Shown here piece by piece: positions 3,398 through 44,628 of a DNA stretch of 64,000 bases (position 1 is its first letter; every line of letters begins with the position of its first letter). The translations under genes were made by a program, and so were the position numbers. Location of the stretch: sequence record NC_005260.1, one strand, 5' to 3'. The notes beneath the pieces are model-generated. The model had not been told where the DNA came from. It did not search any database and saw nothing but the letters and a program-made list of their open reading frames with translations.

Positions 3398-5239
3398 TCA
3401 ACCCTCTTCCTCTTCAATAATGATATCATCATCGAAACCAAGCCACTGTTTGCGCTTGTGTTCATCATCACCGAACAACATTTCCAGCAGTTCTGGTGTT
3501 TGATCATCGATAACCACTTGTTCCAAAACGAGATTTTCAATACATTGTTTGTATTCGCAATCGTCGCCTTCAACAGTCAACGAGCCAAGACCCTTGATGT
3601 GTCGATGCGTCCACTTGCCGTCGAACTTCTTAGATCTAAACTCGTCGCGAGAATAGCTCCAATCAGTCTTCTTGCCGTTTGTGCTGATATACTCTGGAGT
3701 CCGAACAATGTGAATTCGTCCTTGCTCGAACCAATGCGGCCAGAACTTGTAGAAAAACGCGATAGCCAGCATAGCGATAGAACCCTTGCCGTCTTGATCC
3801 GCGTCAGTCATGATAGCGATATCAGTATAAGCCGGCGCTTCTTTCGAGCGGAGTTCTACGTTGAGAATACCAAGCAGATCTGCGATCTCTTTGTTTTTCA
3901 GCACTTCATGATCAGGCAAATTCCATACGTTCAGCATCTTACCACGCAGGGGATAAGAGCCTTGTGTTTCTTCGTTGCGGAATCGAGTGAATGGACCAAT
4001 CGCCGAATCGCCTTCTGCAAGGAACAACATCGTTTTCAATCTGCCGAGTCCAGCTGCCGCAACGTGTTTCGCTACGTTTGCTTTCTTCGCTTTCTTCTGC
4101 GCTTTAGTTGCAGCCGCTTTATCTGCTGCTTCTTTCTTCGCAAGTGCAGATGCGATAATCGGGTCAATCACTTCTGGGGTTTTCAGAATCTTGCGAGCAA
4201 GAGCCTTATAATCCAGATTCATGTGATCGCGAATCTGTGCCCATGGAGAACTCAATCGCTCTTTTGTCTGACCGTCATACTTCGGCGCTACCAGATTACG
4301 AATAAACAAGCCAATAAGCAAGCATTCTTTGATTCTTGCTTTGTTGATTTCGATCTTGTGCTGACGCTTGATCATCGGAATCAGTTCATCACTCAGAGAG
4401 TCCAGCACGCCATAAACGTGATTGCCACCCTGCTTGGTGTGAACACCGTTAACAAAGCTCAGTTGTCTGTATTCTTCGGAAGTCGCAAAGAACAAGCTAA
4501 CGTTATCATCGTTATGACTTACAACATCACCGAATTGCGCGGCGAACTTACTAAACTTACCTTCAACTTTCTTGCCGTTATACTTGAAAGTAATCGGTGG
4601 GAAGTTTACTGCCAGTGTCAACAGTCGAGACTGAATAACTTGCTCGAAATCTTCATCAAGCTGGAACACACCAAATCGAGTGAAGTCAGGAACAAATGTT
4701 ACATTCGTACCTTTGAATTTACCCGCTTTAGTTGTATAGCTTACTTCATCCGCGTTGTTTGTGCAACGTACAGTTACGGTATTTGTGCCGTTGCCGGTTT
4801 CACCAACGAAACTATCAGAGAAAAAGTTAGTAAGTGCAGAGCCAACTCCGTTTTTACCAATAGTCTTACGATCTGCGGAGAAGTTAGAGCCAGCGCGAGC
4901 GCGAGTCCAAGCAGCCAATGGCAACGGTACTTCAACACCTTCCGGAGTGACTACCATACCCTGAGGCAAACCACGGCCGTTATCTTTGACGCTTACCTGA
5001 TTGTCTTTAATAACTACTTCGATTTGATTTGCATGTTCGAAGTTAGTTCGGATCGCTTCATCCACGCTGTTATCGATCACTTCATCCGTGATCTTTACTA
5101 GACCAGGGACATACGCGATTTGAACAAACTTGCCGTCAACCAGAACATCATGGGTTTCGGTAGAAGTCGAACCGATGTACATATCCGTATTGATAAGGCA
5201 GTGTTCTTTGTCGGATAAAACTTTAAACTCTTGGGACAT
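3398..5239 (-). CDS. 39: DNA topoisomerase II large subunit (gp39+gp60 fused)
   Basis: 613 aa; EVIDNSVDE, DNGRG, GKNGVG ATPase motifs plus TOPRIM AEGDSA, MTDADQDG, IKGLGS. Confidence 0.95.
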   Translation of the reverse strand: MSQEFKVLSDKEHCLINTDMYIGSTSTETHDVLVDGKFVQIAYVPGLVKITDEVIDNSVDEAIRTNFEHANQIEVVIKDNQVSVKDNGRGLPQGMVVTPEGVEVPLPLAAWTRARAGSNFSADRKTIGKNGVGSALTNFFSDSFVGETGNGTNTVTVRCTNNADEVSYTTKAGKFKGTNVTFVPDFTRFGVFQLDEDFEQVIQSRLLTLAVNFPPITFKYNGKKVEGKFSKFAAQFGDVVSHNDDNVSLFFATSEEYRQLSFVNGVHTKQGGNHVYGVLDSLSDELIPMIKRQHKIEINKARIKECLLIGLFIRNLVAPKYDGQTKERLSSPWAQIRDHMNLDYKALARKILKTPEVIDPIIASALAKKEAADKAAATKAQKKAKKANVAKHVAAAGLGRLKTMLFLAEGDSAIGPFTRFRNEETQGSYPLRGKMLNVWNLPDHEVLKNKEIADLLGILNVELRSKEAPAYTDIAIMTDADQDGKGSIAMLAIAFFYKFWPHWFEQGRIHIVRTPEYISTNGKKTDWSYSRDEFRSKKFDGKWTHRHIKGLGSLTVEGDDCEYKQCIENLVLEQVVIDDQTPELLEMLFGDDEHKRKQWLGFDDDIIIEEEEG

Positions 5240-39107: not shown

Positions 39108-39172
39108 TTTGTTTCCGTTGTAGGTGTGTAGGAAAAGAAAAACGAGTCTTTCGACTCGCTGATATTGTACTG

Positions 39173-39418
39173 CTATTTAGAACGAACATAAACATTTTCT
39201 CGCTTCACAATTCCACGAACTAGCTCCAATCGAGCTAACATTTGATTCGGATGTAACGGCGACGTGATATATAACGCATCACTTTCCATATCAACGAGTT
39301 TTCGATACGCTTTCAGAGCGTTTTCGTGTTGAATATAGAGTTCTTCAACTGCGGCTTTATTGTAGCCGCAGACTTCCCAACGATTTAGAGTTTCCGGTAA
39401 AATCACGATTAACCCCAC
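39173..39418 (-). CDS. hypothetical protein
   Basis: 81-aa ORF overlapping the upstream stop. Confidence 0.65.
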   Translation of the reverse strand: MGLIVILPETLNRWEVCGYNKAAVEELYIQHENALKAYRKLVDMESDALYITSPLHPNQMLARLELVRGIVKRENVYVRSK

Positions 39419-39804
39419 AAAGTCAGAAGTTCGGTATCTTCTTTTTTCAAGCTGTCAACGATTGTTTTCAGCTCCGCATAACGAATCGAACAACGACCTT
39501 TGTTGACATCGATACCAGCAGCAGTCAGAACAGACAGTGGAACATGACGAACATTGCCGAATTGAACATCGTTTGTGTTCTTTTCTTTACCATAATCAAC
39601 ACCTAGTTCGATGTGAGTAATGTCAGCAAAGAATACCTTGTTACCTTTGTCAACGATTGCAATATGTTTCATCTTGGTAATGCGTTCGGCGGCACCGATA
39701 AAACCAATTGCTCGTTTCTCTTTCATCATCGTTTCAAAACTCAGACACTCGCCTTGACCGTCTTTATTACGACTCGGGATTACTACGATGGTATCATGTT
39801 TCAT
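39409..39804 (-). CDS. hypothetical early protein
   Basis: 131 aa; GAGGA SD behind an IR promoter. Confidence 0.8.
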   Translation of the reverse strand: MKHDTIVVIPSRNKDGQGECLSFETMMKEKRAIGFIGAAERITKMKHIAIVDKGNKVFFADITHIELGVDYGKEKNTNDVQFGNVRHVPLSVLTAAGIDVNKGRCSIRYAELKTIVDSLKKEDTELLTLWG

Positions 39805-39837: not shown

Positions 39838-39865
39838 ATCTTAACATGATGGCTCTGGGCGTCAA
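39838..39865 (-). promoter_or_regulatory. early promoter with IR around -10
   Basis: TTGACG-N16-TAAGAT; AGAGCCA/TGGCTCT at 39831-39856. Confidence 0.7.
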
Positions 39866-39872
39866 CTACTTT

Positions 39873-39959
39873 TTAGAAAATTGCTGGAGCAACAACGCTG
39901 AACAAAATTCCCAGGATTGCAACAACAACAATCAGTTCAATCAGAGTAAAGCCTTTCAT
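39873..39959 (-). CDS. 28-aa type IV prepilin-like peptide (MKGFTLIELIVVVAILGILFSVVAPAIF)
   Basis: G/FTLIE prepilin peptidase cleavage/methylation motif followed by a hydrophobic helix; ATGA overlap with the upstream stop. Confidence 0.8.
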   Translation of the reverse strand: MKGFTLIELIVVVAILGILFSVVAPAIF

Positions 39960-40219
39960 TTCAGATCCTCACATTGAGTAATAAGTTTAAAACCTTTGTT
40001 TTGCAGTGCATGTCGGATACTTGCATATGCATCAAACTTGCTAACAGCTTGTACCATGTACTTGTCAGTTTCGAATTCAGATACATCCAACTCTGGGAAA
40101 ACCTCAGAGAAACGACGCAATGCAACGGTACTTGCGTGTGCTGCCATACCGTCGATGTTAGCAGACACAAAGGCAATATTGCGCTTGTGATTAACAAAAC
40201 TTCTGACTTGATGTTCCAT
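39956..40219 (-). CDS. hypothetical early protein
   Basis: start revised to MEHQVRSF (GAGGA SD); promoter at 40248-40275. Confidence 0.75.
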   Translation of the reverse strand: MEHQVRSFVNHKRNIAFVSANIDGMAAHASTVALRRFSEVFPELDVSEFETDKYMVQAVSKFDAYASIRHALQNKGFKLITQCEDLK

Positions 40220-40247: not shown

Positions 40248-40275
40248 ATATTAGCAGATCAATACCATGTGTCAA
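40248..40275 (-). promoter_or_regulatory. early promoter
   Basis: TTGACA-N16-TAATAT with TG extension and leader GGACACATCGAAAC. Confidence 0.75.
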
Positions 40276-40292
40276 CTCTTTTGGAAAATAAA

Positions 40293-40312
40293 AATCCGCC
40301 CGAAGGCGGATT
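40293..40312 (-). terminator. terminator after nrdB
   Basis: AATCCGCC-TTCG-GGCGGATT-TTTATTTT. Confidence 0.85.
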
Positions 40313-40315
40313 CTA

Positions 40316-41488: not shown

Positions 41489-42460
41489 TCAGACCTTACA
41501 AACATCACAAGAAGAATCTTGTTCTTCGGTACCATCGGCACCATCGCGAGTGTTCGAGTAATAAAGAGACTTAACGCCGTGTTTCTGTGCTCTTGAAATA
41601 TCTTTCAGAACAACTTTCATCGGGATCTTCTCACCCGGATACACAGCAGGATCATAATAAGTATTTGCACTAATCATTTGATCCACAAACTTCTGCATGA
41701 TAGCTACAATGTCCAAGTAACCCTTCATGCCGTGTTTGGTCATCTGCCAAGCTGTCTCATACTCGCTACCAAGCATGTCTACCTCAGGCACTAGCTGATT
41801 AAAGACACCATCTTTCGATTGCTTGGTGCTCACTAGGCCGCGCGGTGGCTCGATACCGTTTGTGCTGTTGGTGATCTGTGAACTACTCTCACAAGGCATA
41901 AATGCGCTTAGAGTATCGTTTCGCAGGCCGTGCTGTTTGATCTCAGCTCGCAGCCATTCCCAATCCATTTTCAGATCATTCGGAACGATATTGTCAACGT
42001 TCTTATTGTACCAGTCAATCGGTAACAGTCCATCAGCCCATTTTGTCTTATGATGCCACTCGTTTGCACCGCGTTCTTTCGCCAGCTCCATAGACGCTAC
42101 CAAGTTCGCAAACTGCATCATTTCCATGGTGCGGTGAACAAGCTTGTTTGCATTTCCGCTAGAGTAGTTAACAAAATTCTTCGCCAAGAAATAAGCAAAG
42201 TTTGTTACACCCATGCCGAGTGCGCGACGCTTCTTGGCTGCCAGTGCTTGAACGACGGGATAATCCTGATAGTCAAGCAAGTTATCGAGTGCGCGAACAG
42301 CAGCGCGAGCAACGTTTAGGAAGTCTTCATAACCCTCAATTGCGCCGAGATTATACGCCGCTAAAGTGCAAAGGCTTATTTCCGAAACATCTACCTCAAT
42401 TTCTACCGTGGTATATTCTTCATCTTCGTATACTTCGTAAATTCTTTCATGTTCGATCAT
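41489..42460 (-). CDS. nrdA: ribonucleotide reductase alpha subunit, C-terminal fragment (NrdA-b)
   Basis: EISLCTL, RRALGMG, MPCESSSQ, KSLYY, C-terminal CDVC; acidic N-terminal extension. Confidence 0.93.
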   Translation of the reverse strand: MIEHERIYEVYEDEEYTTVEIEVDVSEISLCTLAAYNLGAIEGYEDFLNVARAAVRALDNLLDYQDYPVVQALAAKKRRALGMGVTNFAYFLAKNFVNYSSGNANKLVHRTMEMMQFANLVASMELAKERGANEWHHKTKWADGLLPIDWYNKNVDNIVPNDLKMDWEWLRAEIKQHGLRNDTLSAFMPCESSSQITNSTNGIEPPRGLVSTKQSKDGVFNQLVPEVDMLGSEYETAWQMTKHGMKGYLDIVAIMQKFVDQMISANTYYDPAVYPGEKIPMKVVLKDISRAQKHGVKSLYYSNTRDGADGTEEQDSSCDVCKV

Positions 42461-43160
42461 TTTCTCTAAATCTCCTATTGAGAATAAATCTGGAGATTCC
42501 GGTTTCTTTCATGGCAATGCCTATGCTTGGATATTCAATGCCGCCAATGACAATTTTTATACCGTTCGGTGCCGGCTTTCCTAAATTAGTTGCTCTTGAC
42601 TTAGGCACATATTCTTTATTGTGTTCATCATCACCAAGCTTATAGAGTTTCCACCCATGGTGATTACTTCTTTTACCGCGACAAACTGCACTCATTGTAC
42701 TGGGATTTAATCCGTGCTTCAAGCAGAAATCTTTTAACCCAGAAACAATGTGTTCTTCTCCCGTAGGAGACACGAATCGCCATAGATAAGAAAGCTTTTC
42801 TCTTTGAACATCAGACATTGGCTTTCCTTTGTTCGGAGCAATACTTCCAGTTTTGACTTCGGATAAAGCCTTAGCGAGTTTGACACGATTTGATTCATGC
42901 ATATATGCATAAACTCTACTATGTTCTTTATTTCCAACTCGCATCATGTTATAAGCGAATATCAGTTTGTTGCTTTTATAAATCTTAGTCAATAAATGAT
43001 GAACAACATAGTGTGCTTTAGCAGTTAGATATACCAAATTGTCGTCACTATCATCACCTCCCATACATCTTGGGATAATATGATGTTTCTCTTTGTAACC
43101 GGAGATCTCCGAATTTTTAAATTTGTTGATAATTAAGTCGTGTATTCTCTTATAATTCAT
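42447..43160 (-). mobile_element. mobE: free-standing HNH homing endonuclease (mobE-like) splitting nrdA
   Basis: EKHHIIPRCMGG...NLVYLTAKAHYVVHHLL HNH motif; C-terminal NUMOD-like DNA-binding repeats. Confidence 0.9.
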
Positions 43161-43204
43161 ATTTGCACCCTCTTAACGTACACGACTATTTAGAGGGTGC
43201 AAAT
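43161..43204 (-). promoter_or_regulatory. mobE RBS-sequestering hairpin with internal late promoter
   Basis: 13-bp perfect stem ATTTGCACCCTCT/AGAGGGTGCAAAT abutting the ATG; CTAAATA at 43187-43193. Confidence 0.9.
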
Positions 43205-43206
43205 TT

Positions 43207-44628
43207 TTAGTATCTCAGAGACTTATATTGATCCGTCGCTACCATAAGTTTGAACTTATCAACTTCGGACTTTTTGACTTTAAACAACATCTTTTCTTTC
43301 TTTCCCATAGGGACTGTCGGCAGCGCGATTTCGATGCACAGATTACCCATACGAATAGGCTCTTTGTACGGAGTAGCCGAGTTAACGTTATCAACGAACA
43401 TCGGATAAATGCGACCGGTGCCAGTTCTTTCTTGTGCGAACAGATTGAACAACTCGGAGGCTTTGATACGCTTCTTACGACACCAAGGCTCGTTTTCCAG
43501 CATTTCGTACAGCTCTTTGAACTTCACCGGATCTTTATAAAAGAGATCGTAAAGCTCGCCGTTTTGAACGTCTGGACTAAAGAGCGTGATATAGTCGTCA
43601 TTTTTCAGACGCTCGAAAAACAGCTTGTTGATTTGGATACCGTAGTCAAGCTGGCGAATTCGATTTTCTTCCACGCCCTTGTTGTTTTTCAGAACAAGGA
43701 TTTTTTCAACTTCAAGATGCCACATTGGATAGTAAAGAGTAGCAGCGCCACCGCGTACACCACCCTGTGAGCAACTTTTTACCGCAGTCTGGAAATATTT
43801 CCAGAACGGAATAATACCAGTGTGGCGAACTTCACCACTTCGAATGCGAGAACCTTCGGCACGAATAGCGCCACCGTTGATACCGATACCAGCGCGTTTG
43901 CTAATATAGTCAACGATTGAACTTGCGGTAGCGTTAATGCTATCGAGTTCGTCGCCGCTTTCGATCTTCACGCATGAGCTAAACTGGCGAGTCGGGGTTC
44001 GAACACCAGCAAGAATTGGCGTCGGTAGACTCAGTTTGCCCAACGATGTTACGTCATAAAAGTTTTTAACTTTAGCGATTCTATCTGTTTTTTCGTCTTG
44101 ATGCAAGCACATTGCAACAAGCATATACAGAATTTGAGGTGTTTCGTAAATCTGATCGGTACTACGATCTTTCGCCAGGTACTTCTCTTTAAACTGCATT
44201 ACGCCAGCATAAGCAAGATCAAAATCGCGATCATGCTTGATATAGGCATTCAGTTCATTGAATTCATCATCTGTCCATTTGATGGCAAGATCTTTATCAT
44301 AGATGCCGTCTTGTACCAAGTCAAGTGTGTGTCGTTTCAGATGAATCGGGTCAAACTGATTGTAAACGTCTTTGCGAATCGCATACATTTGCAGACGAGC
44401 AGCGACGTATTGATAATCGGATTGTTCAATAGAGATACGATCTGCCGCAAATTTAATTGCCAGCTTCTGAATGTTCTTTGTGCTCATGCCGTCGGTGATA
44501 GAAGGCATAATACCGTTCAGGATTTCATTCGGATCGATTCGAGTTCCAGCAGTAGCGAATCCCAGAATTTTCAACAGCTTTTTCGGCTCAAAATTCTCGG
44601 TTATCCCACTTGATTTTCTTACTAACAT
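43207..44628 (-). CDS. nrdA: ribonucleotide reductase alpha subunit, N-terminal fragment (NrdA-a)
   Basis: ATP cone, PTPILAG, FSSC, GGVRGG, GNLCIEI; basic C-terminal extension; start MLVRKS (the track ATG lies in the -10 box). Confidence 0.93.
   Translation of the reverse strand: MLVRKSSGITENFEPKKLLKILGFATAGTRIDPNEILNGIMPSITDGMSTKNIQKLAIKFAADRISIEQSDYQYVAARLQMYAIRKDVYNQFDPIHLKRHTLDLVQDGIYDKDLAIKWTDDEFNELNAYIKHDRDFDLAYAGVMQFKEKYLAKDRSTDQIYETPQILYMLVAMCLHQDEKTDRIAKVKNFYDVTSLGKLSLPTPILAGVRTPTRQFSSCVKIESGDELDSINATASSIVDYISKRAGIGINGGAIRAEGSRIRSGEVRHTGIIPFWKYFQTAVKSCSQGGVRGGAATLYYPMWHLEVEKILVLKNNKGVEENRIRQLDYGIQINKLFFERLKNDDYITLFSPDVQNGELYDLFYKDPVKFKELYEMLENEPWCRKKRIKASELFNLFAQERTGTGRIYPMFVDNVNSATPYKEPIRMGNLCIEIALPTVPMGKKEKMLFKVKKSEVDKFKLMVATDQYKSLRY

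Follow-up and report, generated by a model that had tools for sequence, protein, structure and literature searches.

The alpha1-N segment of type IV pilins serves as a membrane anchor and afterwards as the filament core; the glycine before the cleavage site (G-1) is the prepilin peptidase determinant, and the first and fifth residues of the mature protein (F1 and E5) serve methylation and assembly. To our knowledge, of the phage tools directed against type IV pili, Aqs1 and Tip hit the ATPase and PfsE hits the platform protein, and none mimics the pilin itself. Short peptides can be active: residues 1-38 of gonococcal PilE engage the machinery in a G-1- and PilD-dependent manner (PMC4877100) and a small membrane peptide of phage Pf4, PfsE, blocks pilus extension via PilC (PMC8764522). 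Here we show that a 64,000-nucleotide stretch of Aeromonas phage Aeh1 (bases 1-64000 of AY266303 / NC_005260; hereafter the window) carries Aeh1p044, a genuine phage gene that encodes a complete class III signal and nothing past the alpha1-N helix. We describe its conservation, its surroundings and its relatives among phages, and weigh how such a product might act on the host.

A prepilin signal without a head

Aeh1p044 occupies positions 39873..39959 of the minus strand and consists of 28 codons and a stop, as given by both the GenBank coding sequence (CDS) and the translation of the open reading frame (ORF). A 921-nt query around the ORF was 100% identical to the Aeh1 record, with matching coordinates. 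An earlier sequence-only reading of the window had placed a 28-codon ORF at this position, naming no strand, and its translation is identical to the peptide quoted there. That reading had also called the ORF unannotated, which is incorrect: GenBank and RefSeq list it as CDS Aeh1p044 / NP_943922.1, a GeneMarkS prediction that the record describes as 'similar to N-terminal sequence of bacterial secretion protein pilin'. The orthologue in phage PX29 is annotated with a comparable pilin note, and in UniRef the PX29 protein and longer relatives from KVP40 and G1 are listed as prepilin-type N-terminal cleavage/methylation domain proteins. The ORF was left uncalled in avDM12-TAAL, phiAS5, Ah1, AsFcp_4, and phiWae14. 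The observation as first reported is thus real and not due to chance, though the gene had already been annotated.

The signal comprises a predicted three-residue leader, Met-Lys-Gly (39951-39959), followed by Phe-Thr-Leu-Ile-Glu and a hydrophobic run that continues up to the C-terminus. The predicted mature part, a 25-residue alpha1-N stub (39876-39950, with the stop codon at 39873-39875), has a grand average of hydropathy (GRAVY) of 2.62, a single membrane-buried Glu at +5, and neither Tyr nor Trp. Its Gly and Pro are in register with G14 and P22 of solved full-length pilins, and because its last residue, mature residue 25, falls 3 residues past the Pro aligned with P22, the product corresponds to the membrane-embedded alpha1-N segment only. 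The absence of a globular head, as originally claimed, is borne out by the position of the stop, behind which lie a 68-nucleotide (nt) promoter-bearing spacer and then the next gene.

Profile searches agree with the description of the N-terminus as a complete class III signal, with Gly at -1, Phe at +1, Glu at +5, and a hydrophobic run. Aeh1p044 scored 32.9 bits against Pfam PF07963 N_methyl (curated cut-off 21.2) and 35.8 bits against NCBIfam TIGR02532 (cut-off 16.3; E = 4e-9). Given that the window contains 1746 open frames of at least 20 codons, this E-value excludes a chance ORF, as does the conservation of orthologues described below. Among solved structures, full-length pilins match best, through their N-termini (geopilin, PilA, MshA, PilE, and GspG); geopilin chains are the top matches, with alignments limited to their first 25 mature residues. 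The equivalog models for GspG, GspH, PilA, PpdD, and ComGC likewise match only over their first ~25 positions and score far under cut-off; the GspG model TIGR01710, for example, reaches 30.9 bits where 88.85 are needed and aligns over profile positions 1-27 of 134. The product has no alpha1-C, alpha-beta loop, beta-sheet, or D-region, and so is not a structural pilin subunit. Compared with the short pilin-like PHROG families (13280, 10597, 11263), the peptide matches 13280 best (37.5 bits), over profile positions 4-30 of 67 only; the N-terminus is common to both, the tail is absent from Aeh1p044, and synteny is lacking. No pilus or secretion assembly genes were found near Aeh1p044, which sits between nrdB and nrdD of a T4-like phage.

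A tblastn search for conserved headless pilins in related phages, as the sequence-only reading had proposed, recovered orthologues in Aeromonas T4-like phages. These included Aeh1 and Ah1 (Cinqassovirus), phiAS5 and avDM12-TAAL (Chrysonvirus), PX29 and AsFcp_1/2/4 (Angelvirus), and phiWae14, which is unclassified in its record and agrees with phiAS5 in stub and locus layout. All orthologues begin Met-Lys-Gly and continue, across the predicted cleavage site, with Phe-Thr-Leu-Ile-Glu. In seven phages across three genera the stub is 27-29 codons long; the stop position is constant within one codon, and GAGGA is kept 5' of the ATG in 7/7 orthologous loci, including that of PX29, from which the upstream gene Aeh1p045 is absent. 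Substitutions between Aeh1 and phiAS5 were counted using the Nei-Gojobori method on an alignment of seven 84-nt ORFs, two of which (2/7) carry a one-codon gap. Over codons 1-18, the proportion of synonymous differences (pS) was 0.77, near saturation, and that of nonsynonymous differences (pN) was 0.05 (pN/pS ~0.07). Over codons 19-28, pS was 0.61 and pN 0.49, with all replacements hydrophobic and the Pro retained. This pattern therefore places constraint on exactly those residues that the peptidase and assembly use (G-1, F1, E5).

The constant length, start, Shine-Dalgarno (SD) sequence, and stop, together with low pN at near-saturated pS, rule out a recent or passively decaying remnant. The sequence-only reading had named decay from a longer pilin gene as an outcome that would speak against it; instead, three genera keep 27-29 codons under purifying selection. 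A 43-amino-acid (aa) ORF on the plus strand (39846-39977) was also considered as the coding frame and rejected, given that it is lost in phiAS5 and that the substitutions sit at third positions of the minus-strand frame.

Expression signals and a shifting neighbourhood

All features of the locus lie on the minus strand. An intrinsic terminator (40291..40314), consisting of a hairpin and a T-run, ends the nrdB transcript and isolates the unit formed by Aeh1p045 and the stub gene; its stem is conserved in seven phages, and the central 12 bases are invariant across their alignment. It is followed by a sigma-70-like promoter (40248..40275; TTGACA, 16 nt spacer, TAATAT, 10/12 matches) with an upstream TG, of which the -35 hexamer, the TG, and the -10 hexamer are kept in the same alignment. 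The sequence-only reading had spoken of an early promoter: a conserved sigma-70-like promoter is indeed present, whereas 'early' derives from its consensus only. Since the nrdB terminator and the promoter elements are conserved across seven phages, early expression is a reasonable inference, and the stub is probably expressed early. In PX29, where p045 is absent, the stub is the first gene behind the conserved promoter.

Aeh1p045 (39956..40219, 87 aa) belongs to PHROG 23306, of unknown function, and its homologues occur in Aeromonas phages only. It had no match in Pfam and only sub-threshold, uninformative ones in NCBIfam, and its AlphaFold2 (AF2) model was unusable, with a predicted local distance difference test (pLDDT) score of 45.7. 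The longest ORF would start at an ATG (40249) overlapping the gene's own -10 hexamer; the annotated start codon at 40219 (87 aa) agrees with the promoter and with the PHROG 23306 alignment, which starts from residue 11 of the long form. The proposed translational coupling of the stub to this gene is supported by sequence: the TGA of Aeh1p045 and the ATG of Aeh1p044 share 4 nt (ATGA, 39956-39959), and a GAGGA Shine-Dalgarno sequence (39966..39970) lies 6 nt 5' of the ATG, within the last Aeh1p045 codons.

A second promoter-like site (39838..39865; TTGACG, 16 nt spacer, TAAGAT) starts 8 nt past the stub stop and precedes Aeh1p043, and a comparable TTGAC element lies behind the stop in avDM12, phiAS5, and phiWae14. 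Downstream are Aeh1p043 (39409..39804, 131 aa, PHROG 23814) and Aeh1p042 (39173..39406, 77 aa as annotated), both of unknown function, and behind the latter a terminator (39141-39160). Elsewhere in the nrd region, nrdA (41489-44628) is, per the record, interrupted into nrdA-A and nrdA-B by mobE, an HNH homing endonuclease gene.

The stub persists while its neighbours vary among the seven phages. An additional gene of ~90-100 aa is found downstream in phiAS5, avDM12, phiWae14, and PX29, and Ah1 and AsFcp_4 have lost both p043 and p042 through a deletion whose junction lies 4 nt past the stub stop. Because the p043 remnant begins there, the deletion spared the stub precisely; in each of these two phages (locus positions 1588-1710), all that remains of p043 is its last ~11 codons. 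Comparison of Aeh1 with avDM12-TAAL places a mosaic boundary inside Aeh1p045. The end of nrdB and the promoter are 80-100% identical, the body of p045 (40000-40215) is ~30-65% identical per 30-nt window, and the last ~14 codons of p045 together with the entire stub (39868-40000) are 93-100% identical. This distribution of identity suggests that the SD-bearing p045 tail and the stub were exchanged or retained as one module.

Miniature pilin-like genes in other phages

When the Aeh1 peptide was used as a tblastn query, 174 phage records were matched. With host genus read from the phage name, these included phages of Synechococcus (49), Pseudomonas (46), Vibrio (32), Aeromonas (27), Acinetobacter (8), Delftia (2), Salmonella (1), and Microcystis (1), with a further 8 records named 'Bacteriophage sp.' for which no genus is given; Escherichia and Klebsiella phages were absent from the 174. 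The ORFs behind the matches range from 37 aa in AhP_Mru1, a T5-like Aeromonas phage whose ORF also has a Met-Lys-Gly leader, through 44 aa in PhiW-14, 59 aa in the KPP10/PAK_P3/G1 group, 66-67 aa in the KVP40 group, 72-74 aa in 44RR-type Aeromonas phages, and 82 aa in Vibrio phage 1.081.O, to 107 aa in Acibel004 and 127 aa in cyanophage ACG-2014f. PHROGs contains several short pilin-like families of unknown function and one named 'pilin'. Positional orthology of the stub with the 66-82-aa Vibrio-phage genes or the 72-74-aa 44RR-type genes was rejected, their flanks being without nrd or p043/p045 homologues.

Viral and bacterial genes were compared by scanning IMG/VR and one genome per bacterial species with a single degenerate DNA pattern (ATG-Lys-Gly-Phe-Thr-Leu-Ile-Glu-Leu). 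Viral contigs yielded 15 distinct ORFs of 27-181 aa (median 57). Bacterial genomes yielded at least 113 distinct ORFs, with a median of 161 aa among the matches listed; two of those listed were 90 aa or shorter, one of which is not hydrophobic, and none came from an Aeromonas genome. The difference in length between viral ORFs and the bacterial matches listed was significant (Mann-Whitney p = 2e-8). In 36/107 full-length bacterial prepilins with Met-Lys-Gly among the matches listed, no alternative in-frame start is available, which argues that a three-residue leader is natural. A second viral pattern scan found mature lengths of 34 or less in Aeromonas phages only. Phage pilin-like genes thus appear to be systematically miniaturised, with Aeromonas phages at the headless extreme, a trend that appears undescribed in the literature searched.

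When the 31-aa PX29 form was compared with 1.84 billion representatives by phmmer, 3341 matches were obtained. Many database matches of 34-50 aa resemble contig-end fragments of ordinary pilins; each of the three short matches inspected (34, 47, and 50 aa) is a complete gene on a phage-like contig. The 50-aa gene (L181 4001-4153) and the 47-aa gene (L183 3427-3570) each overlap the upstream gene by 4 nt, as in Aeh1, the gene upstream of the former encoding a cell-wall hydrolase family protein. The 7-kb contig with the 34-aa gene (L180) is a near-perfect inverted duplication of gene order (1474-1578, 4001-4105) and may be an assembly artefact.

Several individual loci deserve mention. The 37-aa ORF of AhP_Mru1 (Demerecviridae; L010 1501-1614, also L028 5094-5207) is nearly identical to the Aeh1 stub over its first 13 residues, a likeness that reflects either convergence on an Aeromonas host or the transfer of a gene from one phage family to another, unrelated one. 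Another 28-codon ORF, on a 116-kb IMG/VR contig with no relation to these phages (L016 12502-12588), is one that starts Met-Lys-Gly-Phe-Thr-Leu-Ile-Glu and has GAGGAG upstream; its helix is less hydrophobic (Asn, Thr) and its flanks are unrelated to those of AhP_Mru1-type loci. In AhFM11, the prepilin motif lies at about residue 79 of an annotated 152-aa CDS (L152 367-825). The annotated start is probably wrong, given that a GTG just before the motif gives ~74 aa, similar to the 72-aa ORF of a 44RR-size contig (L029). In PhiW-14 (L151 723-1013), the 44-aa pilin-like ORF is directly followed by a gene whose annotation notes similarity to Aeh1p107; that gene is a possible recurrent partner.

Possible modes of action and comparison with known systems

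The reading that we favour, tentatively and from sequence features, is that the processed alpha1-N stub acts as a dominant-negative subunit or decoy on the type IV filament machines of the host. The host prepilin peptidase (TapD in Aeromonas) would cleave Aeh1p044 after Gly3, and the resulting 25-residue stub, with Phe1, Glu5, Gly14, and Pro22, would fill sites meant for the alpha1-N of pilins or pseudopilins, both on the assembly platform and at the base where the filament grows, in Tap or MSHA-type pili and in the type II secretion pseudopilus. Without a head, it would there behave as a dominant-negative subunit or decoy and lower pilus and/or secretion function during infection. Translation, processing, target, and effect of Aeh1p044 are all steps that we infer. 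The statement that Aeromonas Tap and Msh pili and type II secretion share a prepilin peptidase agrees with the literature: Tap and Bfp/MSHA-type pili are present, and TapD, which serves both Tap pili and type II secretion, is required for the latter (PMC3658858). With one prepilin peptidase for pili and type II secretion, the stub could affect adhesion, secretion, and DNA uptake together. Among the proposed routes, titration of the peptidase is the one we consider least plausible: the stub keeps Gly(-1), and as a cleavable substrate it would have to compete with pilins, which are very abundant. Overall, the interpretation given in the sequence-only reading is partly supported, and its notion of a jammer is plausible, with good precedents in other systems.

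Several points weigh against a dominant-negative stub. The sole function assayed for gonococcal PilE fragments was lost in those of 34 residues or fewer (PMC4877100), so that a 25-residue stub may not dock. Membrane insertion and access to the peptidase have to be assumed, as 28 residues are too short for co-translational targeting. The C-terminal third is near-neutral at the residue level between Aeh1 and phiAS5, and family scores do not discriminate the filament class (GspG 30.9, GspH 24.6, and PilA 24.1 bits, all far below equivalog cut-offs). What a strictly lytic T4-like phage would gain from disabling pili is not obvious. The literature searched contained no transcript, ribosome-profiling, proteomic, or phenotype data for Aeh1p044 or its orthologues, and no functional study of phage mini-pilins (Aeh1, KVP40, PAK_P3/KPP10).

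The main rival, which we regard as unlikely, is that the processed stub passes for unassembled pilin of the inner-membrane pool and binds the transmembrane (TM) segments of a PilS-like or PleC-like sensor, so that pilin expression is turned off, or cAMP/c-di-GMP surface sensing rewired, without physical jamming of assembly. Signalling via TM1 of PleC in Caulobacter needs no more than 17 residues of mature PilA, and a synthetic PilA peptide lowered pilus-phage susceptibility by 77% and attachment by 71% (PMC7196804); PilS senses membrane PilA via its six transmembrane segments (PMC8088505, PMC6058289). A signal would act sub-stoichiometrically, and the strong constraint over mature residues 1-15 spans a length near that of the Caulobacter signalling peptide, although an assembly poison predicts the identical conservation pattern. 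Such pilin-pool sensing is, moreover, an assumption for Aeromonas, and turning pilin genes down by transcriptional repression takes long compared with a lytic cycle, in which T4-like phages usually shut down host transcription anyway. An envelope-stress trigger is very improbable: here a hydrophobic-Phe C-terminus in the periplasm would activate a DegS/AlgW-type protease and, through a sigma-E-type response, remodel the envelope for the phage. A truncated Pseudomonas aeruginosa PilA ending Phe-Thr-Phe does activate AlgW and AlgU (PMC3684759), and 6/7 orthologues end Ile-Phe, but the PX29 orthologue ends Phe-His, against a terminal-Phe rule. Lying ~3 residues past the helix-breaking Pro, the end may not protrude from the membrane, and the motif is not shared by the longer phage pilin-like proteins.

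The two remaining alternatives dispense with a role in type IV filaments. That Aeh1p044 encodes a generic single-pass inner-membrane peptide, with its pilin-like N-terminus an inherited or convenient anchor, seems improbable to us; such a peptide could, for example, modulate the time of lysis or the membrane potential, or keep related T4-like phages out at the stage of DNA entry. Several small membrane proteins encoded by T4-type phages act in exclusion and lysis control, and the high hydropathy of the product, its location among small early genes of unknown function, and a C-terminal part that is free to change while it stays hydrophobic are all in keeping with this. An anchor alone, however, needs no Gly-1, Phe1, or buried Glu5, yet no orthologue has lost any of the three, despite synonymous divergence at saturation, and all the other short pilin-like ORFs recovered from phages have them as well. 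In addition, matches are confined to phages of hosts with active type IV pili, and two unrelated Aeromonas phage families (T4-like and T5-like) have similar Met-Lys-Gly stubs. That the ORF is a non-functional leftover, the passively carried stump of a formerly longer phage or host pilin gene, is scarcely credible. Longer phage pilin-like genes of 37-181 aa, including those of 72-74 aa in 44RR-type Aeromonas phages, do make an origin by truncation plausible, but they are not syntenic with the Aeh1 stub, which outlasts deletion and replacement of its neighbours, keeps its length, start, SD, and stop across three genera, and retains a pN/pS of ~0.07 over codons 1-18 at near-saturated pS.

If the dominant-negative reading holds, the most conserved part of the pilin would itself be the point of attack, and the stub would show the minimum pilin portion sufficient to engage peptidase, platform, or sensors. 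It would also explain the miniature 'pilin' genes in many lytic phages of pilus-bearing Aeromonas, Vibrio, Pseudomonas, Acinetobacter, and cyanobacteria. A broader proposal is that stubs and tiny-headed pilins form a widespread, unrecognised class of peptidase-processed dominant-negative mimics that shut type IV filament machines, including pili, type II secretion, and DNA uptake, during lytic infection via the universally conserved alpha1-N interface, with the Aeromonas 25-residue form as the minimal natural inhibitor; this is possible, but we hold it to be doubtful. Whatever the mechanism, Aeh1p044 clearly exemplifies a phage gene of fewer than 30 codons that is under purifying selection and is overlooked in most genome annotations.

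With type IV pilins and type II pseudopilins, Aeh1p044 shares a short basic leader with Gly as its last residue, the Phe and Glu at +1 and +5, and a hydrophobic alpha1-N with Gly14 and Pro22; it differs in ending at mature residue 25, in its 3-residue leader, and in being a lytic-phage gene outside any pilus or secretion operon. Even naturally short pilins (Geobacter PilA-N, 61 aa; Caulobacter PilA, 59 aa) have a complete alpha1 of ~50 residues and polymerise, whereas the Aeh1 product is less than half their length. The pilins of the archaeal provirus SNJ2 are also virus-encoded and use host processing and assembly machinery (PMC12426801), but they are full-length and build filaments, and the Aeh1 product cannot be a normal filament subunit. 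Active headless alpha1-N fragments are known in the 17-aa Caulobacter PilA peptide 'CIP', which binds a sensor kinase TM helix and lowers pilus-phage susceptibility (PMC7196804), and in the 38-aa N-terminal domain of gonococcal PilE, which engages the machinery PilD-dependently (PMC4877100). These are laboratory-made or proteolytic pieces of the host's own pilin, whereas the Aeh1 stub is a stand-alone, selected phage gene.

Among phage proteins that disable type IV pili, Aqs1 of DMS3 and Tip of D3112 are soluble cytoplasmic binders of the pilus ATPase PilB, encoded by temperate phages, without a membrane segment and not pilin-like; Aqs1 also disables DNA uptake and type II secretion across species (PMC13436744, PMC8764522). 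PfsE (PA0721) of filamentous phage Pf4 is the closest functional model for a possible action of the stub. It is likewise a very small phage peptide, a single-pass inner-membrane protein with a cytoplasmic N-terminus, and by binding the platform protein PilC it stops pilus extension and excludes pilus-dependent phages (PMC8764522). PfsE is not pilin-like, however, and depends on an aromatic cluster (Tyr16, Trp20) that both stabilises it and allows it to bind PilC (PMC8764522), whereas the Aeh1 peptide has a full prepilin signal and no Tyr or Trp. No sequence relation between the two appeared in the Pfam, NCBIfam, and PHROG searches, and no direct comparison with the PfsE sequence was made.

Other close counterparts are the short pilin-like proteins of phages, namely KVP40.0030 (66 aa, PHROG 13280), those of KPP10/PAK_P3/G1 (59 aa, PHROG 10597), PhiW-14 gp120 (44 aa), AhP_Mru1 (37 aa), and the cyanophage 'pilin' (127 aa, PHROG 3433). 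They have the class III signal, the alpha1-N segment, and the lytic-phage context in common with the Aeh1 stub. These proteins retain a short periplasmic tail, often with a Cys pair, whereas the Aeh1 group, which is not syntenic with the KVP40- or 44RR-type genes, represents the tailless extreme.

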